Source: Lepidodermella squamata (Eukaryota; Animalia; Gastrotricha). From it: DNA of 64,000 nt. The stretch lies in contig JBLDXI010000019.1 in the NCBI GenBank assembly GCA_047495785.1, positions 3,100,001 to 3,164,000 on the forward strand. The letters run 5' to 3'. The notes beneath the pieces are model-generated. The model saw only the letters and a list, made by a program, of their open reading frames with translations, ran no database searches and was not told where the DNA came from. The position numbers were made by a program, and so were the translations under genes. Positions 1,692-57,214 of the stretch are shown here, piece by piece. Within the stretch, counting starts at the first letter, position 1. Every line of letters begins with the position of its first letter.

Positions 1692-2078
1692 TGTGAGAAA
1701 AACATGAATTGTCAGGTGTTTTGGACGCATTAAAGTCGATTAATTTTCCCTGTGAAAACATTGGTTCACAAGCTAATCCAGGTTCCTACTTATGATTAGC
1801 CACTATTCAACCGATCGATGTGGATTTTACAGGAACACCTGACAAAAAGGCTTTCTTAGAAATAGAGCGATAAGGATTAACTAGGTCTACGCGCACAGTC
1901 GAGCAGTGAATCACCCCTTGACATCGCCAAGACGGCGGGACACCCACGCTAATATCCTTGATTCTCAACAAGGGTTCTCGATAAGGCTTCTCTTACCGAA
2001 AGAAATAACCTAATTTTGCTACCCGACCAGGTGCTTTCTCACATCCTAGCTGCATTGGCCGGCGGAAGGTAACCAGGC

Positions 2079-2085
2079 TATAAAA
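2079..2085 (+). promoter_or_regulatory. TATA box conserved upstream of the lectin-pseudoprotease copies (also 7820-7826 and 13055-13061)
   Basis: caggcTATAAAAacttc lies 44-45 nt before the ATG in all three copies that have a 5' end. GATAAG motifs occur upstream. Confidence 0.7.
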
Positions 2086-2122
2086 ACTTCGCAGCTCCAG
2101 TAAAATATCAACATTTCGAAAA

Positions 2123-3637
2123 ATGGCATTTCTACTTGCACTATTGTTAACGTTTATAACCCTCGTTGCAGGGCTCGACGATCCGTCAAATGCGGACCAA
2201 CCATGGCCGAGAGCTGATAACTTGCTTGCTTTCTTCCCAATGACTGGACAGTACAAATTGAAAGACGTCGGGCCATACAACGTTGAGGCTTGGAATTACG
2301 ACTCAATAACCGTCGGGTCCGGTCCATTCGGCGATCCAAATACCGCTCTTGGTACCAAAATACCATCAAGGCCCATCCTAGAGACTTCCCTTTCTAGATC
2401 AGGCTTAAGCCTGAATAAAACTTTCACGCTATCTTTTGCTTATCGTCGTCATACGGACAGCATAATGCCACGCCTCTTGGTTTCAATCAGTCCAACCCGG
2501 GGGCAGTATGATTCGATAAATATTCGCGCACAAGGAAAAAAGTTGGCAGTTCAACTAGGCTACAACCAAATCTTCTTTGACTCCGTACTCAACAGTGATG
2601 GAGCTTGGAGCTTTGTGACTATCACTCTGAATACACAGACAAAAGTGATTTCCGTTCTTGACCGATTTGGGAAAGGCGAAGTGACTACATATTATGAGAA
2701 ATATCGTTTCGGGGACATTAGTGAGCACAAGATTATCAGGGTAGGCAGCAGTCAATATGATGATTATGGTCTTGATCCGAATGATGGAATGGCTTGTGTT
2801 TCATTGTACAACGTCGAGCTGAACCCGCTAGAAGTAGCTCAACTCTCCCAGGCATGTCGAGCTGTGATCGGATCAGCGCCTTGCGGCTCACCGAGACTCC
2901 CCTTAACGCCCGTTCCGTCCTTCGTCAGAGGGAAGGCATTTGTTCCGTTACCAGGTCAATTCCCATGGCTAGCTTCGTTACGCAAGGACGGAACACATGT
3001 CTGTTCAGCAACCATTCTCGACCAAACTCGACTGCTGACAACAAAAGATTGCATCGACAAACAATCTCTTTCAGCCTACGACGTGGTAGTCGGTGCACAT
3101 GATCTGAAAGTCACAGAGAGCCACAGCAACACTCACAAAATTGCTCAAATAAAATCTGGGGATTCACTCACTGTCCTGCGAATTAATGGCGCCGTCGATC
3201 TGTCCAATCCATACGTCAACGACGCTTGTTGGTTCAGGACAGATCTTGACAAAGATCTGATAGAAGATGGAATATTTTTCGCTGGCTGGGGCAAAAACGG
3301 TCGCTATGGCCTGACAAGCCAAGGTGTGCCGCGGTACGTCACGGGCGATTTAATGTCAAGCAGCCAGTGTGGACTTCAATATGCGGACTTCAATTCCTCT
3401 AACGAAATTTGTTTTGACAATACTTCAACTGAGCCAGGAGTTCCATGCGATGGCGATCAAGGCAGTCCGTTATTGGCAGAAATCCTGTTGCAACGGGGTC
3501 TTAGCGAACGCCTAGGAGTTATAGGAGTCTTCTCCAAACGCGACGAAAGCTGCTCTAATGGCAAGCCTGGACGCTTTGTTAAGCTGAGTGCCGATCAAGT
3601 AGATTGGATAGCTAATGCCTTGGCTAATTTTATATGA
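2123..3637 (+). CDS. Secreted LamG/pentraxin-like lectin domain plus inactive trypsin-like serine protease homolog (copy 1)
   Basis: Intronless 504-aa ORF with a signal peptide. LamG_3-like motifs: LLAFFPM, FTLSF, WSFVTIT, SLYNVELNPLEVAQL. Trypsin fold: PCG linker, GQFPWLASL, HVCSATIL, AGWG. TTKDC replaces TAAHC and GDQGSP replaces GDSGGP. Confidence 0.88.
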   Translation: MAFLLALLLTFITLVAGLDDPSNADQPWPRADNLLAFFPMTGQYKLKDVGPYNVEAWNYDSITVGSGPFGDPNTALGTKIPSRPILETSLSRSGLSLNKTFTLSFAYRRHTDSIMPRLLVSISPTRGQYDSINIRAQGKKLAVQLGYNQIFFDSVLNSDGAWSFVTITLNTQTKVISVLDRFGKGEVTTYYEKYRFGDISEHKIIRVGSSQYDDYGLDPNDGMACVSLYNVELNPLEVAQLSQACRAVIGSAPCGSPRLPLTPVPSFVRGKAFVPLPGQFPWLASLRKDGTHVCSATILDQTRLLTTKDCIDKQSLSAYDVVVGAHDLKVTESHSNTHKIAQIKSGDSLTVLRINGAVDLSNPYVNDACWFRTDLDKDLIEDGIFFAGWGKNGRYGLTSQGVPRYVTGDLMSSSQCGLQYADFNSSNEICFDNTSTEPGVPCDGDQGSPLLAEILLQRGLSERLGVIGVFSKRDESCSNGKPGRFVKLSADQVDWIANALANFI

Positions 3638-3737
3638 ATGTTCTCCGAATAATAATTTGACTACTCTTTTGCCAATCGATGAGTTTTACGCCGGCGCTAT
3701 TCAGTGAAAGTTAATTTTTGACCATAATTTAGGCATA

Positions 3738-3862
3738 CCGTATTTCTCGAAAATATACCGCACTTCGAAAATATCCCCCCACTCCGATTAACCCCAACCC
3801 TTAAAAATTGTTTGTTCAATCAAACAAAAATATACCCCAGTGTATATTTTCGAAAAATACGG
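3738..3862. mobile_element. MITE, Tc1/mariner (pogo/Tc2-like ends)
   Basis: TA-CCGTATTTCTCGAAAATATAC ... GTATATTTTCGAAAAATACGG-TA: terminal inverted repeats with a TA target duplication. Confidence 0.8.
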
Positions 3863-6324
3863 TAATCTGTTATTCCCGATCAAGTGATGATCATGTTGAC
3901 TGCGTAGCTCTACTTTGGCTAAATTCATGTAAATTGTCTCCGAATGTAACGACGACTACTGTAATAAATATACCTGTTTGAGTTTCGCGGCTTTCACCGT
4001 TAAATATGATTAGATTTACGATTGTTTTGACTTAAAAAGTTGATCGGTTTTGTAACGCAACTCCTTGCGAGAAAATACTACTTTAAAGATACTATAAAGG
4101 GTAATAGGCGAAAGATCAGTGGTCAGTGGCGTAACCAGCCGTTCAATGAACTAGCAAAATGAAAACAAAAAACCCCTCTACGGCTTATTTTCTCTACAAA
4201 ATTGCTATATAGTTGTTGACCACACAAGAAGGCAAGCGGTTCCACGCAGCACTTACGCGCTAAAAAGCTAAATTTATAGGTCAGGTTATTTCTAACCGCT
4301 TCATCGCCCCAGAATGAGGAGGAAGGCGAGAGTTTCAGGAGATTTCGGGTTTATAAACGCACAACTTCGCGCACAACTTCGGACCACGGGGGCGACGCAA
4401 GAACAATAGGGCGCACCGAAGTATCCGAAGTGCGAAAACCATCCCGTATCACAATTTTCAGTATTCCGTTGTGGTTTCACACTGAACAGTGAAAAGTGCT
4501 CATTAGCATATTTCATCTTACGGAATACTGAAAATTGTTGATACGGGATGTTAGTCCACCTTATTGATGTAAGCCTGATTATTTGGGTTACAAAATAAAA
4601 GTCAACTCGTAGTTTTCGTAGTCTTATTTGTATTGTCTTGTCACTAAGTTCCAAACTTCAATACTGCCGACTTGTTTTCCCGGACAGGACGAAATTCCCT
4701 TTTCGCTGGGGCGAATGGCGAATTCAATTGCGCCTCCATACCACTCGTGCTATTCCCGATTTAGTGAATTTAATGCAATAGTTCAAACCTAATGAGATGA
4801 AGCTTCAGGGCCACTCAGACAGTGTCTAGGGTTGACAATTACGCCCTCTGAACTGCGCAGCCCAATATCGATCCATCTGCATTGGCCTGAATTCTTCCCA
4901 AAAATATTACAATCGCCGGGGTTACATTGGCATATTTTGAGCTGCTTTAGGCGGAGCGCGGAGCCATGCCACGACTTGCGCTCCTTGACTCGACCCTTGA
5001 CATTGACTAGTAATGTTGTTGCCGCGTGTGCTACTCTGCTTTGAAAACCGCACTCATCGGCATAATCATCACTGAATTAGCTATTTACGAGGCGACCATA
5101 CCGTGCGCTCAATTAGCTACCGCCCGCTGTGGGTGCAAACTGGTGCCCAAACCATTACTCATTAACCTGAGCAAACAAATTCCGCTCGCTCGCGAACGTT
5201 CCTCATCGAATTTGGCTAATTTATATCTGCGTTATGCCAATATGGAATCACTCCAATAACTGTAACGCAAATAAACTAAAGTCGTCTGAAATCGCTGTAA
5301 AACTCTCTAAGACTCCTTATAATGCAATATCGATTATGGAAACAATTTTCGTGCTGGGCTAAGACAACCAGATTTTGCAGCGATCGAATACAGTTTACTG
5401 GAAGAACAATTGGAATTACAATTGGAATGCGAGCGAAGCGAGAAATATTTGAAACCGCATCCATCCAAGTGAAGATTTTCGATAGAAAACGTCAATGAAA
5501 CCAAGTGATGTTAAGTACCGGATGGCAACCGTTGTAAATTTAATCATCGTCTAGGAAATTTCCGCCCCATCGTCGCTGTAATCACTGTTATTAATCGGCT
5601 CTCCTTCAGCATTTGAACCTTCATCATTATCATTGCGCTGAGATAAAGGTATAGAACCACTTGTTTTGGCGAAAAATTAGTCAACCGAGTCACTTTGTTT
5701 TAGCTAGCCGTATTAATTTACGTAATAGCCCGGGCTACTATTCGAGATGGGCTTCTAGGTCGATGTATCGTTGTTTGGGTGGGCTTCTATTCGAGATGGG
5801 CTACAATTCGCGAATGGGCTAGTATTTTTCGGTTAACTTGATACGATTATGCTTCTTTCGTTATGAAGAACGCGTCTACATCAAAATTAACAGCATTTTT
5901 CTAGATCGACCCCGTCGATTTAGTTCTGGGCCGCGGACGTCTGACAATGATATTAGAAGGACGCGCCGCTTATAATAGGGCAATACACTTCGCGCTCATG
6001 TTGCTGCCTTGCGTGCAGTAGAGCAATAGCTATAGGTTATAGGTGAAATAGTACAATAAGGTGCGTCAAGTATTAGCATGAGTTCGAATGTTGTCGAAGT
6101 CGCCGTCATTATCATCAGCTGTAATGTCGACGTTACGACATTAAATAAGGATAAGGCCCATTTTCACATCTTTGTGAACGCTTTGTGAAATTCATATCTG
6201 TTGATGCCTCATGCTCATTACGAAATGCCGCGCATGAATGGCTTTTTGGCACATCTGAATTACGACTTGTTCAAAATCTTTCCAGACGAAGTAGTTTTAC
6301 TCTTTTCGCGACATTATCAAAGCC

Positions 6325-9300
6325 TCAGAGTAAGCATTGGTAAATGGTTTTGTTTTTAGCTTCATCGAATCCTATCGCAAGCCACGGTTTATCGAAGAAG
6401 TGCAGGTACTCAGCTCCGTAACTGACTGATGCTCCGTAGATCACACCCACAGCGAGTACTTTAACGAAAATGCCAGCTTTGACCATTTCCAGAATACTGA
6501 ACTTTCCCGTCTGGAATATCACAGAATTCGGTGGCGAAGCGATCGGCAATAGAAACGCAAACGAGGTTGCGAGCGTCGAAGGAAAAGTGAATAGCAGTGG
6601 GTTTACTTTCCGATACGAAGCCTGTGTTGGAAGTTATTCTGAACAACATCTGGCGCCAAAAATCACTACCTTACCAATTTGATTAGGATTGGAACCATCA
6701 ACGCGGCACAAGCAGCATTTGAAAGCAGTTCTAATCACAAAAAGTTATTGGATGGACTATTCAATAATTTCATAACTCACCAGTAAGGATAAGCATGAAG
6801 ATTATCATGATAAGCAGAGCTAAATAGTCATCCAAAGGTTCGACAATATCCTGAATTAGCTTGGCAAGATAATCTGCTAGGCCAGTCTTTTCCGCCGCAT
6901 ATGCTGTAGCCTGGCCACCGCCCAAAAGCAGCAACAAACCGAACGGGAACATTTTCTCCGTGTCGGACCAGCTAACGACTGACTTTGGTAGAATAAAATT
7001 TCCGCTTTCCTCATCCCTGAAAGGAAGAGATACCGGGAAAGAGAACAAACTAAGAGCTACAAGCATTGCAGCGGTTGACTCTTTGACAAAACCTGTTAGA
7101 GCACGCTAAAAATAACATTTTTCGCTTAGTAAGGTTGTTAACCTGGCGCCATAAGCTCCCAGCCGATGATCGGAGACGTATCCAACTCTCGGGTGATGAA
7201 AAGCCCTATTAGGACGAGGCAATGTCCTAGAACAACGCCTTGCTTGAAATCGAAGGGCGGTAGGGCTTCGTAGATACTTCGAATGGTTGATTCAACTTGT
7301 TCGCTGTGACTGTCAAATGGGCTTTTTCGACAACCGAACGTATAAGCCGGGCCAAAGAAGTACAACAGCATCCATAGCCAGATGATAATGAGAAATACAA
7401 AGCTCATCGGTACAGCGAACACCATAAAGCTGTGGGAAAAACATGAGTTGTCAGGTGTTTTTGGACGCATGAAAGTAGGTTAGTTTTTTCCCTGTGAAAA
7501 CACTGGTTAATACGCTAATCCAGGGTTCTACTTAGGATTTAGCCACTTTCAAACCGATCGGTGTAAATTTACGGGAACACATGACGTACATGGCTTTGTC
7601 AGAAGTAGAGCGATAAGGATTAACTAGGTTTACACGCGCAGTCGAGCAGTGAGTCACTAGTCGACCTTCCCAAAAACGGCGGCACCCCTACGCTAATATC
7701 CGTGATTCTCAACTAGGGTTCCCGATTAGGCTGAACGAAATAAGCTTATTTTACTACCAGACCAGATGCTTTCTCACCTCTTACGCCCAGCTGCTTTGGT
7801 CCGCGGAAGGTGACCAGGCTATAAAAACTTCGCAGTTCCAATAAAATATTAACATTTCGAAAAATGGCATTCCTACTTGCACTATTGTTAACTTTTATAA
7901 CCCTCACTGCAGGGCTCGACGATCCGTCGAATGCGAACCAACCATGGCCGAGACCTGATAACTTGCTTGCTTTCTTCCCAATGACTGGAGAGCACATGTT
8001 GGAAGACGTCGGGCCATACAACATTGAGGCTGAGGATGACTTCCTCGACACAGTTACCGTCGAACCCGGCCCATTCGGTGATCCGAATACTGCTCTTGGT
8101 ACCTCCAGGAGTTCTCGTTCTCTCTTTACATTTTACTTCAGTGGGAAATTCAAGCTGAATACAACTTTCACGCTGTCTTTTGCCTATCGCCGTGATACCA
8201 GCACCTCCAAGCAGCGTGGATTTGTTTCCTTCAAACGACTCGACACGCCTCAGGCAATTGAAATTCTCGAGTATAGCGATGAGCAAATTGCTGTGAGGAT
8301 AGGCGACGAACGAATCATATTTGATTCTGTTATCAATTACAAAGGGGCTTGGAGCTTTGTGACTATCACTCTCAACACTAAGACAAGACAGATTTCAACT
8401 CTTGACCGATTTGGGAGAGGCGAAGTCAAAACTGTTAAACAATATCTCCATAACTTGGACAATGTCTTAGGAATGAAAGTAGGCGGCACCGATGTGTATG
8501 GTATTCACCGGAAGGATGGAATGGCCTGTGTTTCGATGTACAACATCGAGCTGAACCCCCACGAAGTAGCGCAACTTTCCCAGGCTTGCCGAGCTGTGAT
8601 TGGATCAGCACCATGTGGCACACCCAGACTCCCCCTAACGCCAGTTCCGACCTTTGTCAGTGGGAACGCGGTTGTCCCGAAACCAGGCCAATTCCCATGG
8701 CTGGCTTCGTTGCGTAAAAATGGCGTTCACGTCTGCTCGGCAATCATTCTCGACCAGACTCGACTGCTAACCACGAATGATTGCATAGACATACAGTCTC
8801 TTTCAAACTACGACGTAGTTGTCGGTGAACACGATCTGCTAGTCACGGAGAGCCGCAGCAAGATTCATACAATCTCTAAAATAAAAAGTGGGCCCTCATT
8901 CACTATCCTGCTAGTTAAAGGCGCCATCGATCTGTCTCTTCGACGTAATGGACGCGAACTTCAAACTCAATAAGACTCTCACACTATCATTTGCTTATCG
9001 ACGTCATACCGGCAGCTCCAAGCAGCGCGGCCTGTTTTCCTTCATACGCTCCGACACGGCCCAGCAAATTGAAATTTTAACTTTTGGGGATAAAGACATA
9101 GTTGTGAGGATAGGCGACGAAAATGTCTATTTCGACTCCGTTATCAATTTTAATGGAGCTTGGAGCTTTGTGACAATTACTCTGAACACTGAGACAAGAA
9201 AGATTTCAACTCTCGACAGATTCGGGAAGGGCGATGTGAGAACTGTCAATCAATTTTTCACGGACTTGAGCGATATTCGTGGAATCAGAGCAGGCGCCAG

Positions 9301-11437
9301 CAGAATTAACGGCCTTCAGTCAAATGATAGAATGGCATGTGTTTTCTTGTACGACGTCGAGCTAAACCCTGTCGAAGTTGCTCAACTCTCTCAAGCCTGC
9401 CGCGCTGTGGTTGGATCAACACCTTGTGGCTCTCCGAAACTTCCCCTAACACCAGTTCCTACCTACGTCAGAGGGAACGCAGTCGTCCCGAAACCAGGTC
9501 AGTTCCCATGGCTTGCTTCGTTGCGTAAGAATGGCAAACATGTCTGTTCTGCAACCATTCTCGACCAAACTCGGCTGCTGACCACAAAAGATTGTGCTGA
9601 CGAAAGATATGTTTCAGCATACGACGTAGTCGTCGGTGAACATGATTTGCTCGTCACGGAGAGCCATAGCAAAATTCATAAAATTGCTAAAATCAAAACT
9701 GGGGCGCAACTCGCTGTCCTGCTTATAAAAGACGTAATCGATCTGTCGAATCCATATGTCAACGACGCTTGTTGGTTGATGACAAATATTGATAAAGCGA
9801 TGCCCTCAGAATTTGGGGTACACTTCGCTGGCTGGGGCAAAAACGGTCGATATGGCCTGACAAGCCAGGGTCTATCGCGATACGTCTCGGGCGGTTTGAT
9901 GTCTTACAACGAGTGTAGACTTAAAGACCCCGGTCTAGACATCTACACCGAGGTTTGCTTTTCAAATAGTGGCACAGAGCAGGGAGTGCCGTGTGATGGC
10001 GATCAAGGCAGTCCGTTAGTGACTAAATTAATTTTAAAACAAGGTGTCAGCGAACGACTTGGAGTTACTGCGATCTTTTCCAAACCCGATAAACGCTGTT
10101 CGTCAACCGAGCTTGGACGTTTTGTCAATCTAAATGCCAAACAAGTTGATTGGATAGCTGATGCTTTGAAGAAGTTCATGTAAATGGTATATATGACTAC
10201 AAAGTGTTACATTTCATTAGGAGCTCAATAAGGGAAAATGCTACTTTAATAATATATCGAAAATAGCTGAAAGACTGCTTTAATTCAGTTTATCTTAAAA
10301 CTATGTTTCAAATTAAGTAATAAAATCAGGTTTCGGAAGTACTCTTAGTTTCATTTACGTACTCTGTCTTCGACTCATGAGGATTGCGCCGAAGATATTG
10401 AAGCGGCAAAGCCTAAAAACTCATGCCTCATGCCTTCTTTTCGCCCGAATGTGTTGAAATAAAATTTATCTCGCTCACATGTTACTGTAATATGTGGTAC
10501 TAACCTTAAAAAGTTCAAAGTGCTCGGACATCCACGGGCTGTGAATTCTTTGTCGATTTGCTCTTTGAAAATGAGATTTGGCGCGCAGCCAATGACTGTC
10601 CCAGACCCTCCGAGAACCGCACTGTATGCCACTGATAGAAGCAGCATGAATTCGAACTGTCTCAATAGTTCATTCCGCTTTTTGGGTTCAGGTTGTTGAT
10701 CATCTTTCTCCTGATCCGAGCCAGCAATTGAAGCTAGAGTGTTCACTGACGGCAGAGTTCGGTTTGGCAACCGAGTGTTCGATGCTTCAATGGCTTGCTC
10801 CAACTGCTCAGCTACAGCTGAGACGATTGGTACAAATAGAATGGTGGTCATTGAGTTTGAACACCACAAAGATAGAAACCAGGCTGAGAACATGAATCCT
10901 GCGAGGAGCCAGCGTGGTTTCGCCCCGACTGTGAGGAGTACTCCCAGGGCAAATCTTCGGTGAAGACCAACTTTTTCAAAAGCACTAACGACGAGAACAC
11001 TGCCTACAAACGTCATGTTGGACTCGGCCATGTACTCCGGAGCAAGATTGGATGCTTTGACCAGTGACATCAGTGGGAAGAGAACCATGGGTAGGATAGC
11101 TGTAACCTAAAAGATTGAATGCCTCCAAGAATTGTTCTAGAAATTATTGTGTTACTTACAGCTAAAGGCAAACATTCCGTTGTCCATAGTACTATCATAT
11201 AACCCAATACAAAAGCACATTTCATCGCTTTCTGAAATGTTTGTAAAATATGGATTGTTTACTACTGAACAGTCGAAATTTGCATACACTTAGAGCTGGA
11301 TCGTACTCGAAGCAGAAACATAGAGGAAGGAGAAGTAACGGTGTTACAGTTACTATCAGCAGCCTTCGCCAAGACCATAAAAACTCGAAGTAAGTCTTGC
11401 AATCGGCTTGCTCGCTGCTTCGCTTTGAAGACGTCAT
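6325..11437 (-). CDS. SLC13/DASS family Na+/di-tricarboxylate or sulfate cotransporter (Indy-like)
   Basis: Exons 11288-11437, 11160-11231, 10505-11106, 7143-7429, 6781-7092, 6675-6730 and 6325-6621 splice in frame. Motifs: TECLPLAVTAILP, LHRRFAL, LSLWCSN, AYSAVLGGSGT.IG.APNL, LLLLGGG, TELLSN, FLLPIASPPN. Confidence 0.93.
7864..8973 (+). CDS. Lectin-pseudoprotease copy 2a, truncated in the middle of the protease domain; nested antisense in the SLC13 intron
   Basis: Paralog of 2123-3637 up to GAIDLS (~8936), after which it runs out of frame into another copy. Confidence 0.75.
   Translation: MAFLLALLLTFITLTAGLDDPSNANQPWPRPDNLLAFFPMTGEHMLEDVGPYNIEAEDDFLDTVTVEPGPFGDPNTALGTSRSSRSLFTFYFSGKFKLNTTFTLSFAYRRDTSTSKQRGFVSFKRLDTPQAIEILEYSDEQIAVRIGDERIIFDSVINYKGAWSFVTITLNTKTRQISTLDRFGRGEVKTVKQYLHNLDNVLGMKVGGTDVYGIHRKDGMACVSMYNIELNPHEVAQLSQACRAVIGSAPCGTPRLPLTPVPTFVSGNAVVPKPGQFPWLASLRKNGVHVCSAIILDQTRLLTTNDCIDIQSLSNYDVVVGEHDLLVTESRSKIHTISKIKSGPSFTILLVKGAIDLSLRRNGRELQTQ
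8937..10183 (+). pseudogene. Lectin-pseudoprotease copy 2b lacking promoter, signal peptide and first ~70 codons; nested in the SLC13 intron
   Basis: Open frame (LFDV)MDANFKLNKTLTLSF... to a normal C-terminus. It is joined to copy 2a in a different frame. Expression status is uncertain. Confidence 0.65.
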
Positions 11438-13099
11438 TTGCGTGTGGTGCGAAATGTCTAAAATGGTTGCTGAACTGAATCAGAAGGCGAATAGGCGAGC
11501 ATGGTACGTTTGAGATAAGATAATTGTTTGCTATCTCGCTATCTCGACTGTGTCTAATCAACTTTTTAGTGTGTTCACGTTCATACTTCCTACCGCTGGT
11601 GAATGTCGTCCTTGTTGCCCTATTAGAAAGGCAATTAAGTTAGAAATCTGAACGCTAAATAATTTTGTCTCGTATCAGTAGATTTTCCTGAATAAGAATG
11701 GAAGAAAAATTAATTGATGCCTCAAATCGGAATTTGTCTCGAAAGCAGCATTGATCCATCTTATCGAGAATCTTGAATCTTAAATATAGCCTGAAATGTG
11801 GTGCCCCGCATTTTTACAATTTCTTATCAACCATGAGCCATGAGAAATGTTCTCATACGGATTTCACCAATACATATTAGGTCGAGTTTGGGGTAAATTT
11901 CCCACTGGTAAATTTAATAGACGTACCTAGTTGTGCCAGGAATAAACTTTTTCAAGTTTGCGATCATTTTCAAGCTCGCAAATGACGTTTTCAGCTCAAG
12001 TTCATTAAGAGTGGATTTTTCCTCGAAATGATGTCTCTCCGCCGTCGTACCATTGAAGCTTTTAAGATTGAAGCGTGACCTCAGAAATCGCCGTTTCACA
12101 CCAAGCTTGGAAGCACACAAAATCTTGCAAGATTCGCAATTTGAGCCGTAACTCAAAATCGTCGCACACTCCAAAGCCAAGACACAAAATTATAACACAT
12201 ATGTGTCATCACCGCCAATTATATTAGAAATTTCAGTTTCAATCAATTAAGCGTTACCCATATCATTTTTGATATTAGAAAATTACCAATAAAACAGTTC
12301 AAATGGTCCATATTATAGTATTAGTCCCAAGTAATAAATAATGCTGGTCTCTTGTTCATTAAACTGCAGCAAATTGAGGAAATCGAGGATTCAGCAAGAC
12401 GTCCCGGTCCTCTCTGTTCACACTATTTCGCTCAACAGATGGCAAAATTGCAGCAGGGTTTAGTCGCGAAGCCCGAGCAAACTCTGTCGCTATACTATCT
12501 TGGAAAATCTCTTAGAAGTAACTCTGTAACTCTCTTGGAAGAGGTTCGCCGTAATCTCCAAGAATCGAATTCGCGCTCGACAAAATTTCTGCCGAAATAC
12601 CCACGGCTACTGCGCTTGGTGTTAAATTCGAAAAGAAAACAGAAATGCAAAGCTGCAGTTAACACGATGAAGAGCGACATTACAAAATATTAAAAATTAC
12701 CATTAACATCAAATTACCAGGTTGCGAAGTCTGTAAGAGTGTCTTGAGTGTCTAGAGTGTCTATAGGCTAGAATGTCTCTGAGAAACAAGGTCACCTTTA
12801 GCTACGCCCTACGCCCATGGTGCCGACGGCGTTGGTTTTATATCTTAGCCAGGAGTATGACATTTACCCTAAAATAGCGCCGTCTAAACACCGCCCTGAC
12901 TTCGGCAGCCCTACACTACTATTCGTGCGATTCTCAACTACAGTTTCCGATAAGGCTCCCCACCCTGCACGTAATAACCTAATTGCAGTACTTGACCAGG
13001 TGTTTTCTTACCTCCCACGTCCAGCTGCAAAAATCCGAGGAAAGATAAACAGGCTATAAAAACTTCAGCAGTTCCAACGGAATTATAGCATAATCAAAA

Positions 13100-14584
13100 A
13101 TGGCTTTCCTTCTTACCTTTTTTATAACGTTTTTACCTCTCACTGCGTCAAATTCGATCCAACCATGGCCAAAGCCTGATAACCTGGTCGTTTTTTTCCC
13201 AATGACTGGTCAGCAAATGATGAAAGACCTCGGGCCTAAAAATGTTAAGGCTTCGCATTACAACTCATATACCGTCGAGCCCGGTCCATTCGGCGATCCC
13301 AATACCGCTCTTGGTTCCAACAATCCAAATACCCCCATCTTCAATGCTTATGACCCGAGCTTCAAAATGAGTAAAACTTTCACGCTATCTTTTGCTTATC
13401 GCCGTGATACGGGCAGCTCAAAGCAGCGCGGCTTGTTTTCCATCACACGGTCCTCGACGACTCAGACGATTGATATTTCCACTTATTTGGATAAACAAGT
13501 GGCTGCTGCGATAGGCTTCGACAATTACTACTTCGACTCTGTAGTCAACATCGAAGGAGCTTGGAGCTTCGTGACTATCACTCTGAATACACAGACCAAA
13601 AAAATATCCGTTTTTGACCGATTCGGGAAGGGCGAGGTGAAAACAACTAAAGATATTGTCGGGGACCTGAGTAATGTCCAAGGTATCAGAGTCGGCGCCA
13701 GCAGTACCGATGGTCTTCAGGCGAAGGATGGAATGGCTTGCGTTTACTTGTACAACATCGAGCTAAACCCGTTCGAAGTCGCTCAACTCTCCCAGGCCTG
13801 TCGAGCTGTGATTGGATCAGCGCCTTGTGGCTCACCGAGACTCCCCCTAACGCCGCTCCCGACCTTTGTCAGTGGGAACGCGGTTGTCCCGAAACCAGGT
13901 CAATTTCCATGGTTGGCTTCTTTGCGTAAAAATGGCGTTCACGTCTGCTCGGCAGTCATTCTCGACCAAACTCGACTGCTGACCACAAAGGATTGCATGG
14001 ACAGAAAATCACCTCGTTCAGCCTTCGACGTAGTTGTCGGCGAACACGATCTTCAAGTCACGGAGAGCCACAGCAAGATTCACACAATCTCTAAAATAAA
14101 AAGTGGGCCTTCATTCACTGTCCTGCTAGTTAAAGGCGCCATAGATCTGTCCAATCAATACGTCAACGACGCTTGTTGGTTCAGGACAGATCTTGATAAA
14201 GACCCGACAGTAGATGGGTTATACTTCGCCGGCTGGGGCAAAAACGGTCGATATGGACAGACAAGCCAAGGTCTACCGCGATACGTCACGGGGACGTCGA
14301 TGTCTAGCAGCCAGTGTAAACTTGAAGTCCCGGATGTCGACATCTCCAGCGAGATTTGCTTTTCAAATAGCGGCACGGAGCAAGGAGTGCCGTGTGATGG
14401 CGATCAAGGCAGTCCGTTATTGGCGCAAATACCGCTGGAGCGAGGTGTCAGCGAACGCCTTGGAGTCACTGGAATTTTCTCCAAACGTGATGCGAGCTGT
14501 TCGGCTGGCAAGCCTGGTCGCTTTGTTAAGCTGACTGCAGATCAAGTTGATTGGATTGCTGATGCCCTGTCTAAGTTCGTGTAA
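13100..14584 (+). CDS. Lectin-pseudoprotease copy 3 (full length)
   Basis: Intronless 494-aa paralog with a signal peptide, the same TTKDC/GDQGSP substitutions and the conserved TATA box. Confidence 0.88.
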   Translation: MAFLLTFFITFLPLTASNSIQPWPKPDNLVVFFPMTGQQMMKDLGPKNVKASHYNSYTVEPGPFGDPNTALGSNNPNTPIFNAYDPSFKMSKTFTLSFAYRRDTGSSKQRGLFSITRSSTTQTIDISTYLDKQVAAAIGFDNYYFDSVVNIEGAWSFVTITLNTQTKKISVFDRFGKGEVKTTKDIVGDLSNVQGIRVGASSTDGLQAKDGMACVYLYNIELNPFEVAQLSQACRAVIGSAPCGSPRLPLTPLPTFVSGNAVVPKPGQFPWLASLRKNGVHVCSAVILDQTRLLTTKDCMDRKSPRSAFDVVVGEHDLQVTESHSKIHTISKIKSGPSFTVLLVKGAIDLSNQYVNDACWFRTDLDKDPTVDGLYFAGWGKNGRYGQTSQGLPRYVTGTSMSSSQCKLEVPDVDISSEICFSNSGTEQGVPCDGDQGSPLLAQIPLERGVSERLGVTGIFSKRDASCSAGKPGRFVKLTADQVDWIADALSKFV

Positions 14585-14651
14585 ATTGCATAATCCGAAT
14601 TTAAAAAACTTATTCCTCGGTGTAGTAGAAATGGATGAGTGCCATCCACTA

Positions 14652-15038
14652 CATGAGACGTACTATAGGACGCCGTGGCTTGCAGAAAGTCAGAAAAAGC
14701 GTGATATTTTTAATGAGGTCCAAAGTCCAACTCGACCAATGAATCATCTCATTACACTTTTTGCAATCATCTCAAGCCTCTTTTTTGCTTAAGATCAACG
14801 AGATCAACACATCTTTACACAGCGTCACGCCGATCTTTTGCTGTAAAGGAATTCTCATCAGTTTTTAATTATTTACATTTAAAAAATTAAAATTTTATAA
14901 ATTAAAATTTCTTTAATTTCGAAATTACTGGACTAAAATTTAATTCGTATGCACATTCCGATATGCACAGTCCGCGGCCTTCAAGAGGCCCATGTAACGG
15001 GAGCTTCGAAGCCGCGGCGTCCTATAGTACGTCTCATG
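14652..15038. mobile_element. Non-autonomous DNA transposon with an 8-bp target duplication (P-element- or hAT-like)
   Basis: 30-bp TIR CATGAGACGTACTATAGGACGCCG(T/C)GGCTT. ATCCACTA is duplicated at 14644-14651 and 15039-15046. Confidence 0.9.
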
Positions 15039-16814
15039 ATCCACTATAGATTTAAACGGGACTTTCCACCATTATTTTGACTTGAGTTTTTATGACATGT
15101 GAGAAAAACCGTAACGAAATAGCTGAGCTTCACTGTATGCTTCAATTGAAGAAATAAAATCAGGTGTTCGGCATTATCACTGTGATCTTTGCTTCATTCT
15201 TGACGGATTCGTAATCTACGTTCTACGTTTCTCTTCGTTCTGAAATAATTTGAAAACCCGGTTTCAAAATTCCTCATTGATCAAAAGAGCTAATGTCCAC
15301 TCGTCGTTTTATGAAGGTCATTTTTTCGACCGGCTAAGTCATCGACAGCATGTATAGCGAAGTCCATCAGTTGAGCAGCAAGAAATCAAATCTCACAGCC
15401 TTCATACATTTTATTTTTAGTTTTTTGCTGAAATCATTTTTCTTTCATATTAAGCATTTCCGAACAAACACGAACAGACTTGCATCAAGAACAGCGCCGA
15501 ACAAGTCAGTACACTTTGATTTAAACCTCCAGAAATTATTCCAGCCTTGAAATTGGCATCTCTATTGCTCGAGATAGGTAACAAACGTTCCTGAAAAGCG
15601 AATATATTCGAACACGAACACTTGGACTAGTGCGCAACTTTTTTAACCTCAGCACTGATTGCGCACCAGAAAGGAATGAGGAGAGAAACAAATTTCGGCT
15701 CTTCTAAAATTGAAGCTTTCAATGTAATATAATGGCGTAAAAATAAAGAGGTACAGGAAAACCGGAAAAGCAGTTGCGCTATCGATATCGAAATTGTTGA
15801 TGGCGGTGTGGCGGGGAGCAAAAAGCGCGGGAAATAAACAAAATTCAACTTTTTTGTGCGGATATTGACTATTTAGGTGCAAGCTATTAGACTATTTTGC
15901 TATGCGCCTAGTCGAAATAATATTATTATTACTATTATTTTAATCGCAATTTTCACGATTATGACCATCGAGCTATGAGTGGAGTGAATTTTTTTCGAGT
16001 CGCACCGTGCGATATTATTATTGCATTTCATCATCAGCGCAAAAATCAGCAGCTCTTTGGCTTGATCGAGAGAAAAAACGGTGAATAATTATTATGAAAC
16101 GGCGAAAAAATTTAATCAACTCGGCCGCGGGTGCAACTTTTCAAGCCTCGTTTCGAATTTCCGCTCTGCTGTGGGGTTTAGTTCATCTTCATTTTTAGAG
16201 CTTCATACCATCTTATTATTGAAGATTACAAGTGAAAGAGAGAGAGCGAGAAATGATAATCCACGCAACCTTTTAATCAAATGTAAGATGCACCTAGCCT
16301 ACCACCCATTTTACTAGGATAAGATCTTTTGAAGTTAAGTTTCTAACGCTGAGAATTTTCGGATTCATTTTATTTCCACAATTATCTGGCATTTTAGGAA
16401 TTTTAGAATTTTATCCAGATTTTTCTCTATTATTTCTGTACATTTTCTGAGGCTCTGCCAATTGCATACCTAAGTTAGGATTCAAGCGCTGTTCAAGGCT
16501 TGATAACTGAAATAAATTTCCCTAAAATATGGTTTTTCGAGTATGTCGTCGGTGGAGTCTCAATAGCTTTCTTAGTACCATTCCGACTTCCAACCGAAAA
16601 TCTCATTTTTACTGGTACTCAGTTTACTAATCATACACCATAGTCCGCAGGACCAATATCGATTTCTACTATCGATTCTAGAAATCACTGATTTTCCGAT
16701 ATTAGCGATTCAGGAAGCAAGCAAAGCAATTTGTTATGCATATCTTAGGGGCAGTACCATACACATAAAATTCCAGGAAAATGCTGATCGTAAAAATTGA
16801 AAAATTAACGAAGT

Positions 16815-21141: not shown

Positions 21142-24100
21142 ATGAGAATTAAACTCAACTTCGTCCTACTCTTCCTCCTCGTCAATGTTGGCTCAATTGT
21201 CTGGTAAGTTCACAGGATATTTCATGTAATCGTTTAATTTAGATTTTATTCAACATTAATTGCAAACATTTGAGGTCTGCCTCGTTTTTTATCCCAAAAT
21301 TCAATCATTTTTGGCGGTTTTGGAGAAATAATCGGAATCTTAAAAATTTTAGAATTATTCGTTATTGGCGTTCAGGCCGTTTTAGCGATTTTCCGATAAA
21401 TTCATTGGTATTGCCACAAATTTCCCAGACCCTAAAATTGCGGCAAATGTCGCTTCGAATTTTCCAAATTTGTTCGAACATTCGATTTTTAGAAATTATA
21501 TTCTTTTTCGGCCAACTTTTTTTCAAATTTCGGATAAACTTACAATATTTTTTATTCTTAGGGCTCTGAAATTGTCATCAAATCCTGACGAATGCTACCT
21601 GAACGAATTGAAGGAGTACGAAGCGGAGCAATGCACGCCGATGTGTCTGAACATATCGATTCCAATACTGCAACGATCGGCCAACAAATTCAAGGCGTGG
21701 ATGCTGCGCCTCGGTGGCACCACGGTGAAAGAACGCGGCTCCGACGAGTGTCCGATGCAGTGCAAACACGTGAAAAACTACGCTCAGGTGTGCTGCGACG
21801 GCTACGACCGGCCTAAAGACGTCGCTGATGGGCCTTGTCTAGGTAAAACATGGCTTCAAGTTTTTTAGCTCTACATCTTTTAGTAGGATAAATCGGGGTT
21901 CGGGGTTAGCATGGGGAAATTTGCAATTTTAAAATTTACGTTTTTTCGCACAATTTGGGCAGATCTGCCGAGGAAGAACTGCTAAAAATTTGAAAAATTG
22001 TTAATTGCAAAAAATTTGAGATTTTTCGCTATTTGATGAATTTTGATCTTCGATATTATCCTCAAAAACTGTTTTTTTCATTTTTCTTTTTTTTCTTACA
22101 TTTTAAGACAAAAGTCTTTATTTTCAGAAATTAACTTTCCTGAGATCCGTTCTCTCTTCGCCATTTGAAATTCTCAATTTTTTCAAAATCTAAAATAGAT
22201 ATGATTTTAAAATTCGAAATAACTCGATTTTCGATTTCTGATCATACTGCCGCCGCCGTTCAAAAATTCGAAAAACTGAGCAATTTTCAACACAATTGTT
22301 GCTTCCTTGAAAATTGCGATTTCGCAATAAAAAACACAACCCAGTAGGTAATCAATGACGCTCTGCACACTGGTTACCGCTTAACCGGCGAAAAATATAT
22401 TTTTTAATTCATTTCTAAAATCGCAGATTCCGAAAATCACATTTTTAACTAAAAATTCTGCAATATACATTTTTTAAGTAATTTAGGACCAGTTTTCGAC
22501 CGGTTTGACTTGAAATAAAAATTTGGAAAATTCACCAAAATTTGCGGCTCAAAAAGTTGATAGACCTGTTTTCAGCGTTCTAGAATGATTTTTAAGAATG
22601 GTGACCATTGTCTCGAATGAAAAAAAAACAATTTTTAATTATTTGTGAACGACGACGCCCGTATGATGCGTGGAGGTGTAATAGTGTAGAATTTTCAAAC
22701 GAAATTTTTTTAAAATGTTGAAATTTCTCATTTCCTCTAGACGTTAACGAATGCGAATTGGAGCGATTGAACGCGCCGTACGGGAATTTGACATACCCCC
22801 TCTGCAACTACGATCTCAACTACATGTGCGTGAACGTGCCGAAAACGTACCGATGCGACTGCAAGCCCGGCTACGTGCGCAACGCCCTCGCCGAGGTCGG
22901 CTGCGTCGACATGGACGAGTGCCTGGACCGCGCTTGCGGCGACGCGCAGTGCGAAAACACGGTCGGGTCTTACCGCTGCTTCTGCCCCGACGGGTATAAA
23001 CTCGATCATCGAGTGGTCGACGCCGAGCGCAATGTGACGCGGCTCGATTGCGTCGATATCGACGAGTGCAACGATGCGGATCGGCCGCCGGCCTGCACCG
23101 ATGCGAACACGGTGTGCGTGAACGCGCTCGGGTCTTACACGTGCCAATGCGCGCCGGGCTACACGCTGGCTTCTGATGGCAACTATTGCAAGGGTTAACT
23201 GATTTTTACATTTCTTTCGAAATTTATTACTGGGGAATTTCATAAAAAAATTCGAAATTTCCATAATTTTTTACTTAAATTTTGAGATGGCCAGCTGAGT
23301 TGAACCCACATTTTCTGGTTATTGAATTTCCTCAAGAAAAATTTATTAATTTCACGAATTTTTAGATCGCAGTCAAAATTCAACTCTCAAATTTCATGTT
23401 GAATTTTTCGAGACTTGGTCTGTCCTTCTAGTGGGTACTCCAGCTTAATAATACGTCAGGATAATTCATATTTTTTCGACTAACTGAGGCCCAAGTTTTG
23501 AAGAACGATTCATAGGTATTTTTGTAACGGAATTACTCGAAAAAGCCACTCTTAAAATGAAAGCTGGGTTACGTTTAATTACATTTTGAATTTCGATTTC
23601 GATTAATTGGCAAAATTCCTCTAACAATTTAAAACAAGGCGGAAAATAATTTTACTTTCACGCGGTTAATCAATTTCTTCGATCTCGTGGCCATCTTCAT
23701 TTCAGTGACGAATGTCTGATCATGTGACGAATAATATGTGGGCGGACCCAGGGCTGAGCCGATTTTTTGCCCGAGCCTCGGGGAACTATGAATACGAATT
23801 TTTTTCAATTAAGCCCGACCTCGGCATCAAAACTATAGTAAGTCGAACCCGTTAATTAAGTTGGCTCCTTTTGTCGTCAGTGTTTTTGGGCAAAAAATCG
23901 GGGCGCCCGTCAACATGTACGCCACGGGGTCTGAATAATAATTTTTCGACAGCAAAAATCATAACAGTCATTTGAAAATCAGGGATAAATGCGCGTTGAG
24001 AGTGATATTTGTCGATTAGCCTACTTGAAATAATAATGTGAGCTTCTGACATATAACGCCGAAGTCGGAAACCATTGTTATTTAGTGTGGGACTGTCAGA

Positions 24101-38997: not shown

Positions 38998-40582
38998 TTA
39001 TTTTATCAAAATTGAGTTATGCCGTTGTTTTTGAAGTATCGCTGAATTGTGTTCATCTTGATCAATAATTGTTCCTCTCAGAATTGCATTTCGCGACTTT
39101 TTAAGTAGTGCCCTATGCATGTGCCAGGTGTTTCTAGGCGTTGAAAGTAATGCAACCGTCCAAGGCTGCACTTGATCGAATCTTTTAACCCTCCACGGGT
39201 GACTTCCTACACTGAAATTGCAGAAATGCCGATCAGCGATGTTTGCATGGGCTCGAGCGAAGCCGGTAATGATGAAATCATCCAGCTGTAGACCTAATTT
39301 GCCGACGTTCAAGTTCGGAACCGTCAGCCATAATTCGGCCATCGTATCATTGCCCATGACGTAGATTGCTCCATTATAAAAATCTGGCGCTCTAGAAAAT
39401 ATATCCAAAATCAAAATTCAACGATCAGAATTTTGTATTCTGAAACAAACCTCTCGTAGGGGTAATTCTGAGGTGAAATGTACCATTTCGACCATTGATC
39501 ACGATTCGGTTCACCGTACATCCTGTTCCCCGCTAAAAACATTGGCTCCTGCTCATAAGGCCGCAATAGCTCGAGCAATCGATCAAGAAACACAAACGTA
39601 TCGTCATCCATTGAAACGACAAATCTTGCGTGGGAGCAATGAAGCATGGCCCATCGGAACGCTGCCATTGTCTTGAACATCAACTTATCATAAGCATCCA
39701 CAAAATCGTCGATGATAACCATATCATTATAGAAAATCGATTCCGAAATGAATGTCTTGTACTTATCGGGCAAATCATAGCCAAATTTATCTCGACTAGC
39801 GTCAAAATAGCCTTCTGTAAGTCTATCCGCGTAGAATTTCCTCAGATCGTCTTGTGTTTCGGAATGATAGTCGCAGAATAAAGTAGAATTATCGCAAGGT
39901 CTAATTTTCCGCAGTAAATGTTGATAGCCTTCCCTATCACCGCCTATTTTGCCCTCTTTGGTCTGTCCAACAACGAAAACGTGGCGAATCATATCGGAAT
40001 TCGCAGCGTATAAGGGATGCTTCAACCAGGTACTTCGAATCGCGTTTCTTCTCACAAAGTTGTATGGGGCTGATTTGATGAGTAATAGGATTTTCACGCT
40101 GGTATCAGGCGCGTATTTTCCTGATTTATGGCGGCAGGTCAGAGACCGAGGAGTTAGGAAGGAAGGATTTGGATCGGCGACTTGAGTGAAACAGTTTTCG
40201 CATGCAACAGCCTCAGCTAGTTTTTGCTCTGACATTTTGTCAGTCGTCAGGCGTATTGAGTAGTAGCGTTCGTCTGAGTAAGGTTTTCCCGTTCTTCATT
40301 TTGCTTATAAATTTAAAAATTAGTAAATTTTTCAAAGGTTTACCTGTCTTCAATCATTGCAAGAGTCCTACAATCCTGAAAACCGCCGCGAAACATGTTT
40401 GGATTGATGTCATTTTCTCCCCTAAGAACCAAGCTGGGTAACAAGAATACGTTAAACTCAAGCCATAAAACAATAAGAGGCAGTGTGTAGAAAAGAAAAG
40501 AGCCCAATAAAATTGCTTTGCGCGTTCTTGGCCCAGGTAAGAGGCCTCGTGATGAGCGAATGTATATCATGTACGGCTGCAT
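38998..40582 (-). CDS. GT31 beta-1,3-galactosyl/GlcNAc-transferase-like, paralog A
   Basis: Three exons (~40344-40582, ~39452-40293, 38998-~39392). Type II TM, LLIKSAP.NF.RRNAIRSTW, DF.DAY..L.FKT, MDDDTFV, SKWYIS, PDFYNGAIYVM. Confidence 0.9.
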
Positions 40583-55026: not shown

Positions 55027-56555
55027 CTAGTGTATTGCAAAAACGTTATCAAGTGGATCCAAGTCGTTTGGTCCTGAAGTAAGAATAGCTTGATTAACAT
55101 GTTTTGTATTGACAGCGTTCGACAGGAATGCAACGACCCAGGGTGCAATCTGATGCAAGCGATATCTACGCCAACGATGCGAACCGACTGAAAGCTGGCA
55201 AAGGTGCGTGTCCTTAATACCAGCCAGAGCTCGAGCGAATCCAGTTAGGATGAAATCATCGAGTTGAGTCCCCAAGGCGGTGACTTTAATGTTTGGCATT
55301 GTCTTGATAAGAGCGTCAACTGAATCACGACCCATGACGTAGATTGCTCCGTTGTAAAAATCCGGAGTTCTGTAACAAATTAATTCGTATTAATACTGAG
55401 TGAAAAATGCCATTCGTACTTCGTGAAAAAATATGCTATGTAGTAAGAAAATAAAAAAATATCATGGGGTTCGACATCACGAGGTCTCTAAAGATTCGAA
55501 AGATCGGAGAAGGTAGGAAAATAGATTGGTTGTAAATCAGGTATTTACTTGTTTGGGGCAAAAACTTCTGGTGAAATGTACCACTTGGAGCCAACATCGC
55601 GATTCGGTTCGCCATACATGCGATTCCCTCCCAGAAACATCTTCTCGTTCTTGTATCGCTCCAACAAAGCTAATAACCGATCAGGAAATACGAAAGTATC
55701 ATCGTCCAGTGAAACCACGAATCTCGCCTTGGAACAAAATTTCCGCGTCCATTGTAAAGCTGACATGCTTTTGTGAGTCAGATTAGCGTAGCAATCAATA
55801 AAATTGTCGCCGATTATCACATCGTTATAGGTCATCGCTTCGCCTATTTGAAGTTCGAAAGTCTCGATAGGATCGCGAATGACCTTAGTTTCAACGTCCG
55901 AAATGGACTTCCAAAATCGATCAAATTTTCGGCGGTAATTATCGATTTTCTTCTCGAGATCGGCATCTTGCCCGCAGAAAATTTCCTGACATTTTTCTTT
56001 GATCTCATTTGTGAACGCCATCGATTTTTCGTCGAAATGAACCTCTCGACTTAGGCCTGAGAAGAATCCGTACCGGAACCGATGCGGCTGACTGGCGATT
56101 TTACGGTTGACTAGCCACGAATTTCGGAGAGCTTGGCGGCGCTGAAAGTTACCAGGCGCTGATTTTATCATGAAAAACACGTCGAAATCTTCGTTTTCGT
56201 CACAAGTATTCGGCCATTCGAATAAGTACTCTGGCGGTTTGACTTCGAAGCAGTTATTGCAACTTGCCGCTAGAGCGATTTGTTTCTCAGATCCAGAGAA
56301 GCCTTCGCGCATTTTTCGGTAAATTTCGTCCTGATAATCGATGTTGTAATGGCGTTTCATAATGTCGATTGTTCCGCAGTCGATGAAACCACCCTGGAAC
56401 ATGAGGTCGTTGTAGTCAGATTGCGGCTCGATCATGTTAGGCTCGATCTCACTTTGGCCAACCATGGAAGTAAGGTAGAGTAGCGATATTGGTGCGGCAA
56501 TCAATGAAACAAAGTAATGGAAAATAAATTTCGAGAATATTCGCCGCCTCATCTC
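55027..56555 (-). CDS. GT31 beta-1,3-glycosyltransferase-like, paralog B
   Basis: Exons ~55549-56555 and 55027-55369. MIKSAPGNFQRRQALRNSW, LDDDTFV, PDFYNGAIYVM, QLDDFILTG. Confidence 0.9.
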
Positions 56556-57214
56556 AGCATCTTCTATCAATTGTGAAAAAACCACGCTTTAAATTCCAAT
56601 AAAAACGATAATTTTGGTTTAATGAAACTTGACGCTGAATGCTGAAGGCTGAACTCATTATTTTGGGGAAAATAAAGCAATAAATCTAGGTTTTTCAAGT
56701 TTAAGTACTATGTTCTACTAGATTTCGACGTAGAAATGTGCGACGTTGATAATTTTAAATGGCTAGCATAGAATCTGTGCTATGATGTGAAACGCTCACA
56801 ATATGGATTGGCTCGGCCATTTGAATTCTCGCCGCTTTTGCGCGGTAGAGTTGAGAGTGAGCCGCTAAAGGAAAAATTATCCTCATGGCATTTCATCGCC
56901 TCTATCGAAGGCTGCTTCTAAATTGACATTAACCAGGGCAATTAAAAACATTCAAAATTGCGACAAGACAGCAGCGTCAATAGGGCAAGCTTTATTTTTG
57001 GCTGTAAATGAAGAAATGTTAAAACGGTTAACCAGGGTTTAGCAATTTACACCATAAATGCAGAGTTTGTGGCTCCAGAAAAGGATTTTTTCGAGTTTAT
57101 TTTTATTCAATCTTCTCGGCGTTACTGAAGTTACTGAAAAATTATTTTATTTCCGAAGTTTCAAGATACTAATTCACAAATAATTCTCTAGCAAAACACA
57201 TTAACAGCTATAAC

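Follow-up and report, generated by a model that had tools for sequence, protein, structure and literature searches.

The locus and its gene copies

The window, meaning the whole stretch of DNA that was analysed, is 64,000 nucleotides long and comes from the gastrotrich Lepidodermella squamata (contig JBLDXI010000019.1, positions 3,100,001 to 3,164,000). Four related intronless open reading frames (ORFs), here called c1 to c4, lie on its plus strand between 2123 and 14584. Each intact protein (c1 and c4) is laid out as a signal peptide, a 220-residue ConA-like domain (the N-domain) and a chymotrypsin-fold domain of the S1 serine protease type. This pairing of a ConA-like domain with a dead S1 domain is real, rare and previously undescribed in the literature searched. 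The proteins represent a new form of non-catalytic serine-protease homologue, which is most likely an extracellular binding protein. Coordinates are given in Table 1.

A first reading of the letters alone (the original prediction) had described a family of four secreted proteins, each with a lectin-like and a dead protease domain. Four related ORFs were found at the predicted places and all matched Pfam Trypsin (PF00089), with E-values of 2e-21 for c1, 8e-19 for c4, 5e-16 for c3 and 2e-7 for c2. The count of four copies stood but not their equal status, as only c1 and c4 are intact while c2 and c3 are fragments fused out of frame. Scanning all 64 kb of the window in six frames with the profile turned up no further family copy. 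Between the copies, the N-terminal domains share 55-66% of their residues and the C-terminal domains 66-88%.

The C-terminal pseudoprotease domain

The best sequence relatives with solved structures were plasmin(ogen), heparin-binding protein, prostasin and the HGF beta chain (PDB, from E 1e-10). In a HMMER alignment to plasmin LTTKDC stood opposite LTAAHC, replacing His57 with Asp, and GDQGSP stood opposite GDSGGP, replacing Ser195 with Gln. Copy c2 has TTNDC at the first of these motifs. Gly193 and Asp194 were retained. The DIAL position reads S-F-T-V, S-L-T-V or Q-L-A-V in the copies, so Asp102 is lost too (Ser or Gln). Since His57, Asp102 and Ser195 are all replaced, the proteins are classed as S1 homologues and not as peptidases, and the protease-like domain is predicted to be catalytically dead. 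The activation site reads PTF-VSGN, PSF-VRGK or PTY-VRGN opposite PGR-VVGG and has no basic P1 residue. The replacements of His57 and Ser195, the degraded DIAL motif, the missing basic P1 and the retained cysteines had all been claimed in the original prediction, and each was recovered here.

Ten cysteines occupy matching alignment positions in c1, c3 and c4, corresponding to five disulfides. They would fit the 42-58, 168-182, 191-220 and propeptide-to-122 bridges of the protease fold and one pair in the N-domain. In c4 the predicted pairs of the protease part are residues 283/299, 406/420, 432/467 and 243/359. The pseudoprotease part of the c4 model matched solved structures with target TM-scores (template modelling scores) of 0.73-0.83 and a Foldseek E of 1e-15. 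Its VIA Z scores were 24-27 over 210-240 residues against enteropeptidase, plasmin, the HGF beta chain and others.

A basic residue in the linker, within the motif CG(S/T)P(R/K)L or near variants, was kept in 11/11 sequences read (copies and relatives). In c4 it is Arg247 (window ~13838-13840), 9-10 residues ahead of the canonical activation position. It is possibly an alternative processing site, in which case the linker cysteine could hold the two chains together.

The N-terminal ConA-like domain

The window copies scored 13.5-19.1 bits on Pfam Laminin_G_3 (PF13385), below the gathering cutoff of 27.6. Relatives linked to them by profile search at E 5e-19 to 1e-8 scored 29-48 bits, and 19/27 family N-domains matched the model. 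The call of a lectin fold therefore rests on the relatives and on structure. A profile of the 27 domains matched, among solved structures, a LamG_3 S-layer domain (E 1e-5) and neuronal pentraxin-1 (1.6e-4), and also neuronal pentraxin-2 and PTX3, the pentraxin matches spanning E 1.6e-4 to 0.02.

The fold search for the N-domain used a first, shallow AlphaFold model built from four sequences. The predicted local distance difference test (pLDDT) in this model was 57-77 in the N-domain and 40.6 in the protease part. The low-confidence half dropped out and the N-domain was searched alone. The best match was the carbohydrate-binding domain of the arabinanase AbnA (VIA Z 15.2, root-mean-square deviation 3.0, 181 aligned residues). 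Other lectin-like jelly rolls reached Z 14-15, pentraxins 12-13.5 and neurexin LNS domains 11-12, and Foldseek agreed. Clostridial neurotoxin binding domains also appeared among the fold matches but were set aside as a shared lectin-like jelly roll and not kinship. Judged by the model and the relatives, the domain is a ConA-like (Laminin_G_3/pentraxin-like) two-sheet jelly roll closed by one predicted disulfide, and the LamG/pentraxin-like fold proposed for it earlier is upheld, with the window copies themselves staying below threshold. The family adds an N-terminal extension with a PWP motif and a C-terminal helix pinned by a family-specific disulfide. The domain has only two cysteines.

No match to Pfam Pentaxin (PF00354) was found in the copies or in the family N-domains. 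The pentraxin signature H-x-C-x-S/T-W-x-S/T is absent, the aligned block being GAWSFVTI, without His or Cys. The word lectin thus describes the fold and not an activity. For PF13385 itself, no set of ligand residues has been defined.

Whole-protein model

An AlphaFold model of c4 built from 36 family sequences had a mean pLDDT of 85.3 and a predicted TM-score (pTM) of 0.86. A pTM of this value over 494 residues points to a fixed packing of the two domains. A shape search of the ESM Atlas returned nothing but ordinary S1 proteases of several domains, which aligned to the model through its protease part, and no cluster matched both domains. A feature search of the same atlas gave no usable match.

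Relatives and their architectures

An exhaustive HMMER search of 1.84 billion representative proteins with the N-domain profile gave 21 matches at E <=1e-3, the best at 5e-19. All of the 20 that were looked up are unnamed proteins from ENA metagenome or Logan assemblies. Four of the inspected contigs carry animal-type genes (a nuclear receptor zinc finger, Na/Ca exchangers with Calx-beta, tetraspanin, an ANF-receptor domain, NIDO, a tyrosine kinase). The G+C content of the six contigs fetched was 38-41% in every case, like that of the window.

The relatives show several layouts (Table 1). P0007, P0002, P0003, P0013, P0014 and P0015 have Ser, Thr or Arg at position 57 and Glu or Gln at position 195. 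His57, Ser195 and the activation motif were missing from all seven relatives read that have the N-domain followed by the protease domain. This indicates that catalysis was lost long ago and family-wide, and it carries the earlier claim of a dead protease beyond the window. The layout of P0018 is different, with an active-looking protease that has LTAAHC, DIAL, GDSGGP and an R-IQGG activation site. Its domain set resembles that of complement proteases in a different order. The N-domain would be a mobile targeting module, joined in relatives to CUB, to CCP and even to an active-looking protease.

In one relative contig (L003) an ORF with the N-domain and the pseudoprotease lies shortly before an ORF for a transmembrane tyrosine kinase, and a secreted relative follows. 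Receptor-type and secreted forms may therefore be neighbours in that organism. One extension of this reading is that the unit is a lineage-specific signalling module, used both free and as the sensing part of a receptor tyrosine kinase, with the soluble copies acting as ligands, traps or co-receptors. This extension is tentative and was judged unlikely. If true, it would describe a receptor-ligand system made from a dead protease, with an origin independent of HGF-MET and Gas6-TAM.

Word-indexed protein searches with c1, the family alignment and the N-domain alignment found no new member. These negatives carry little weight, as the index has too few exact words in common with the family. Back-translated family motifs were also scanned against JGI metagenomes in two rounds, giving 85 and 163 matching stretches, none of which encoded a relative. 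No named protein with the two-domain design was found in the libraries searched, nor any description of it in the full-text literature searched, where Laminin_G_3 came up in other contexts. The architecture had been called unrecognised from the start, and it kept that status.

Table 1. Positions of the gene copies and promoter elements in the window, and layouts of relatives on other contigs.
Feature	Sequence	Position	Strand	Remark
c1	window	2123-3637	+	intact, intronless, 504 aa; ORF and Pfam Trypsin match (E 2e-21)
c1 N-domain	window	2198-2875	+	preceded by signal peptide
c1 linker and pseudoprotease	window	2876-3634	+	
c2	window	7864-8973	+	ORF, 369 aa; truncated copy
c2-c3 junction filler	window	8937-8950	+	14 bases matching neither copy; c2 and c3 frames differ
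c3 ORF	window	8948-10183	+	411 aa; partial copy
c3 copy homology	window	8951-10183	+	
c4	window	13100-14584	+	intact, intronless, 494 aa; transcribed
c4 N-domain	window	13160-13819	+	
c4 linker and pseudoprotease	window	13820-14581	+	
TATA box of c1, GGCTATAAAAAC	window	2076-2087	+	12-mer identical before c1, c2 and c4
TATA box of c2, GGCTATAAAAAC	window	7817-7828	+	
TATA box of c4, GGCTATAAAAAC	window	13052-13063	+	
N-domain + pseudoprotease, as in window	P0007; L001			tandem pair in L001
Two N-domains + pseudoprotease	P0002; L004			in tandem cluster of four members
CUBx2-N-domain-pseudoprotease	P0014			secreted
CCPx2-N-domain	P0011			
Arrays of up to four N-domains	P0004			
Single N-domains	further relatives			~290 aa
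Signal peptide, active-looking S1 protease, two CCP, N-domain (C-terminal)	P0018; L005	10001-12310		same N-domain
N-domain + pseudoprotease ORF	L003	2-1537		same strand as kinase ORF, ~770 nt before it
Transmembrane tyrosine kinase ORF	L003	2303-4090		outer part possibly CUB-like by eye
Secreted CUBx2-N-domain-pseudoprotease gene	P0014; L003	5509-7752		after kinase ORF

Selection

Selection was estimated from the four window copies by the Nei-Gojobori method and by sliding windows. Synonymous divergence (dS) between the copies was 0.3-0.9. The ratio of non-synonymous to synonymous divergence (omega) was 0.21-0.30 in the protease-like part and 0.31-0.66 in the N-domain. Between c1 and c4 dS was 0.5-0.6 and omega was 0.23 in the protease-like part. 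The inter-domain helix and the linker were the most constrained regions, with a ratio of non-synonymous to synonymous differences per site (pN/pS) of 0.10-0.14. The alternation of scaffold blocks with divergent blocks that had been noted in the N-domain was confirmed by alignment. The scaffold blocks had an omega of 0.11-0.20 (0.1-0.3 in sliding windows) while their synonymous differences (pS) were still 0.4-0.5. With this much synonymous divergence in invariant blocks the conservation is attributed to selection, and recent gene conversion was rejected as its cause. On these rates purifying selection acts on the scaffold blocks and, in the intact copies, on both domains.

Four blocks of the N-domain are variable (c1 residues 41-62, 79-98, 111-151 and 186-221), with pN/pS of 0.8-1.3. 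Pooled, these blocks, which were picked post hoc for their variability, had an omega of 0.56-1.06, and no bootstrap interval lay wholly above 1, each of them reaching or including that value. At the level of secondary structure the variation covers three whole neighbouring strands (c4 124-145) plus loops, and alternate hydrophobic positions are conservatively replaced. An exposed sheet would show this pattern, but so would drift. The diversifying evolution originally proposed is not borne out by these values, which relaxed constraint fits equally well.

These results bear on the view that the proteins are soluble pattern-recognition lectins under diversifying selection, with a face that tracks pathogens and a dead protease that recruits or blocks a cascade. 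Tandem duplication with copy loss, and variation concentrated in about half of the N-domain, would suit such a role. So would the carbohydrate-binding modules and pentraxins among the best fold matches, and the pairing of the N-domain in relatives with CUB, CCP and an active-looking S1 domain, which is the vocabulary of a complement-type cascade. However, omega in the variable blocks was never significantly above 1 even though the blocks had been selected for variability. The domain has neither the pentraxin signature nor a Pfam Pentaxin match, the analysis identified no residues for binding sugar or calcium, and GATA sites are not enriched. An immune lectin was rated improbable.

The broken c2/c3 pair

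In a self-BLAST the DNA homology of c2 to c1 ended at 8936 (codon 358) and that of c3 to c4 began at 8951 (codon-equivalent 96). Copy c2 encodes a signal peptide, the whole N-domain and ~115 residues from the start of the pseudoprotease, followed by 11 out-of-frame codons and a stop. Copy c3 begins ~95 codons late, without promoter or signal peptide, and the rest is open to the natural stop. The simplest reading of the junction would be a single deletion running from the 3' part of one gene across the spacer into the 5' part of its neighbour. An independent DNA run (X1), which covers the whole 6-kb stretch evenly, listed no break or loose end at the junction (no single bridging contig was seen). 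The alternative of c2-c3 as one spliced or frameshifted gene was rejected because the two parts are in different frames, half of each domain would occur twice in the product, and a second run (X2, described below) has no reads there.

The dS between c2 and c4 was 0.285 in the first protease-like part (8608-8936 against 13820-14151) and 0.686 in the N-domain. Gene conversion or recombination has probably touched the protease part of c2/c4, giving a mosaic ancestry.

Promoter and expression

The TATA 12-mer listed in Table 1 lies 36-48 nt ahead of the ATG in c1, c2 and c4, inside ~200 nt of conserved upstream sequence. The TATA box of the original prediction is thus confirmed as an identical element before three copies. 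The GATA sites are not, since WGATAR occurs 0, 0 and 1 times per 300 nt of upstream sequence against a window average of 0.75, at or below background and with no enrichment. For the strong tissue-specific expression predicted from these sites, support ends at the conserved TATA box and a c4 transcript of ordinary depth.

Run X2 contains joints that skip 53 nt (11105-11157) and 56 nt (11232-11287) with CT..AC ends, which are the GT..AG introns of a transporter gene on the minus strand. Its depth was 30-60 over the transporter exons, 0-2 over the spacer and zero over c3. One gap-free contig spans c4 from 13188 to 14434 at a depth of ~52 and 97% identity, which indicates that c4 is transcribed at an ordinary level as an unspliced message. 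No transcript of c3 (depth zero) or of c1 was found in X2. In the DNA run X1, 89% of the sampled c1 words were present.

The recent differences listed for c4 were 12 synonymous and 3 non-synonymous. For c3 against run X1 the listed differences were 6 synonymous and 7 non-synonymous, a ratio that is suggestive of relaxed constraint and not significant. It could be argued from c3, silent in X2 and with this ratio, from the breakage of both c2 and c3 and from the lack of transcript evidence for c1 that the whole family is decaying, with all copies becoming pseudogenes without a present function. Against this, c1 and c4 have kept open frames of ~500 codons despite a dS of 0.5-0.6, with an omega of 0.23 in the protease-like part. 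Copy c4 is transcribed and its recent differences are mostly synonymous (12:3), and the promoter blocks are conserved. General decay was considered very improbable.

Proposed function

The preferred reading is that c1 and c4 are secreted, non-enzymatic, two-domain extracellular binding proteins, possibly soluble counterparts of a receptor ectodomain, and that the locus carries a small tandem family of intronless genes with a turnover of copies by gain and loss. A rough probability of 0.6 was assigned to this reading as a whole. The proteins would act by binding and not by cutting. The beta-sandwich would offer a changeable surface, made of three adjacent strands and loops that differ freely between copies. 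The pseudoprotease, rigidly packed on the beta-sandwich, would be a scaffold or a second binding surface. Several features suggest an extracellular recognition or signalling module: the unit is rigid, its interface is well conserved, one part of the sandwich varies freely, and relatives combine the N-domain with CUB, CCP or an active-looking protease. The kinase neighbour points the same way. From the kinase gene next to a relative in L003, the soluble forms are most likely free counterparts of a receptor ectodomain (a ligand trap, co-receptor or ligand) or soluble recognition proteins.

Several points weigh against the preferred reading. Transcript evidence was obtained for c4 only, from a run labelled as a different organism whose RNA nature was inferred from the spliced joints. 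The L003 arrangement is the adjacency of two ORFs on one strand. The variable blocks evolve at about the neutral rate and may simply not matter. Their positions were placed on secondary structure, and a single exposed face is conjectural. No partner was identified for binding, nor any glycan-binding residue or calcium site. Some serine-protease homologues keep unexpected activities.

Secreted dead S1 domains commonly serve as cofactors or regulators, as in arthropod clip-domain homologues, protein Z and the scabies-mite inactive proteases (SMIPP-S). The window proteins resemble the clip-domain homologues (PPAF-II, masquerade) and SMIPP-S in having a secreted S1 fold, a replaced triad, kept disulfides and multi-copy families. 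SMIPP-S also matched the window pseudoprotease in fold (Z 22-23). The window family differs from both in its ConA-like N-terminal partner and in the family-wide loss of the triad and the activation site. No CLIP match was found in Pfam for the window copies, and the N-domain has two cysteines where a clip domain has six.

These likenesses raise the possibility of a cofactor or regulator of active proteases, in which the dead domain docks a protease, inhibitor or substrate and the beta-sandwich localises the complex. It is the commonest known role of such domains, and the fold matches to scabies-mite inactive proteases, protein Z and a zymogen prophenoloxidase-activating factor (Z 22-23) agree with it. 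The linker basic residue, kept in 11/11 sequences read, could be a processing site. However, the copies lack a clip domain, and the profile scan of the window gave only the four copies and no partner protease. The most conserved region is also the one between the domains and not the former substrate cleft. A cofactor role was held to be quite improbable, more so than an immune lectin.

As an extracellular binding protein, the preferred reading, the family would be most like the known non-catalytic serine-protease homologues and would resemble the HGF beta chain and haptoglobin more remotely. In HGF and MSP the dead S1 domain of the beta chain is the receptor-binding part of a soluble receptor tyrosine kinase ligand, and plasminogen and the HGF beta chain were among the best matches of the window proteins. 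In Gas6, compared here together with protein S, LamG domains are the receptor-binding part of such a ligand. The window proteins join both kinds of domain without PAN, kringle, Gla or EGF modules. No PAN or Kringle match was found in Pfam for the window copies, so a plasminogen-related growth factor was not indicated. HGF needs a canonical activation cleavage, whereas the window proteins lack that site.

Other systems share single features. Pentraxins and LamG/LNS proteins (PTX3, neuronal pentraxins, SAP, neurexin) have the same beta-sandwich fold (Z 11-13.5). Compared with pentraxins, the N-domain of the window proteins has the PWP extension and the pinned C-terminal helix and is fused to a protease-like domain. 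MASP, C1r and C1s combine CUB and CCP with S1 domains. The relatives P0014 and P0018 share these modules, while the window proteins have no CUB or CCP and the domain order differs. Haptoglobin is a binding protein made of CCP and a dead S1 domain, with a fold match of Z 24. The homology seen between the window family and haptoglobin, MASP, C1r and C1s lies in the shared modules. PAPP-A (pappalysin), a secreted regulator of growth-factor signalling, has a LamG-like sandwich N-terminal to a protease (fold match Z 12), but its protease is an active metzincin whereas the window family has a dead S1 domain. A tick pappalysin-like protein carries Laminin_G_3 (PMC4430169).

The window family is a folded, transcribed and selectively kept example with a new partner domain, from a poorly studied animal lineage. 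The reuse of dead proteases as binding proteins is a recurring theme in immunity and growth-factor signalling. To our knowledge, the cases described so far come from vertebrates and arthropods. If the soluble forms pair with receptor kinases that carry the same module, the family would be a compact model for the shuffling of ectodomains between secreted and receptor forms. If there is no such pairing, it would be a modest addition to the catalogue of pseudoenzymes.

Neighbouring features

A gene for an SLC13/INDY-like Na-coupled carboxylate/sulfate transporter lies on the minus strand at 6770-11560. Its exon at ~10515-11104 corresponds to positions 69-207 of the Na_sulph_symp profile and its exon at 6770-7066 to positions 305-372. 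The c2/c3 pair (7864-10183, plus strand) would be antisense within a ~3-kb intron of this gene. Such an intron is unusually long for this genome, where introns measure about 55 nt. Upstream of c1, at 1675-1722, lies a 16-residue remnant of the transporter exon at 7414-7470, and 1410-1624 (215 nt) repeats 6332-6542 at 82% identity. From these matches, the duplication that made the copies took along pieces of the host transporter gene.

An element of ~400 bp resembling a miniature inverted-repeat transposable element (MITE) lies directly 3' of c4 at 14652-15038. Its 30-bp terminal inverted repeats (14652-14681 and 15009-15038) match at 29/30 positions. The depth of DNA run X1 rises to ~2485 over the element, indicating a high copy number. 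One X2 contig departs from the window sequence at 14627 and picks up again with that of 15030-15052, so the element is absent there in the other organism.

Elsewhere in the window, GT31 galactosyltransferase-like ORFs lie on the minus strand at 39411-40235, 55545-56585, 57215-57943 and 58666-59346, and both ORFs tested matched Pfam Galactosyl_T. The remaining features are a calcium-binding EGF exon at 22758-23198, the start of a rhodopsin-type G-protein-coupled receptor at 61100-61759 and a ligand-gated channel exon at 479-796.

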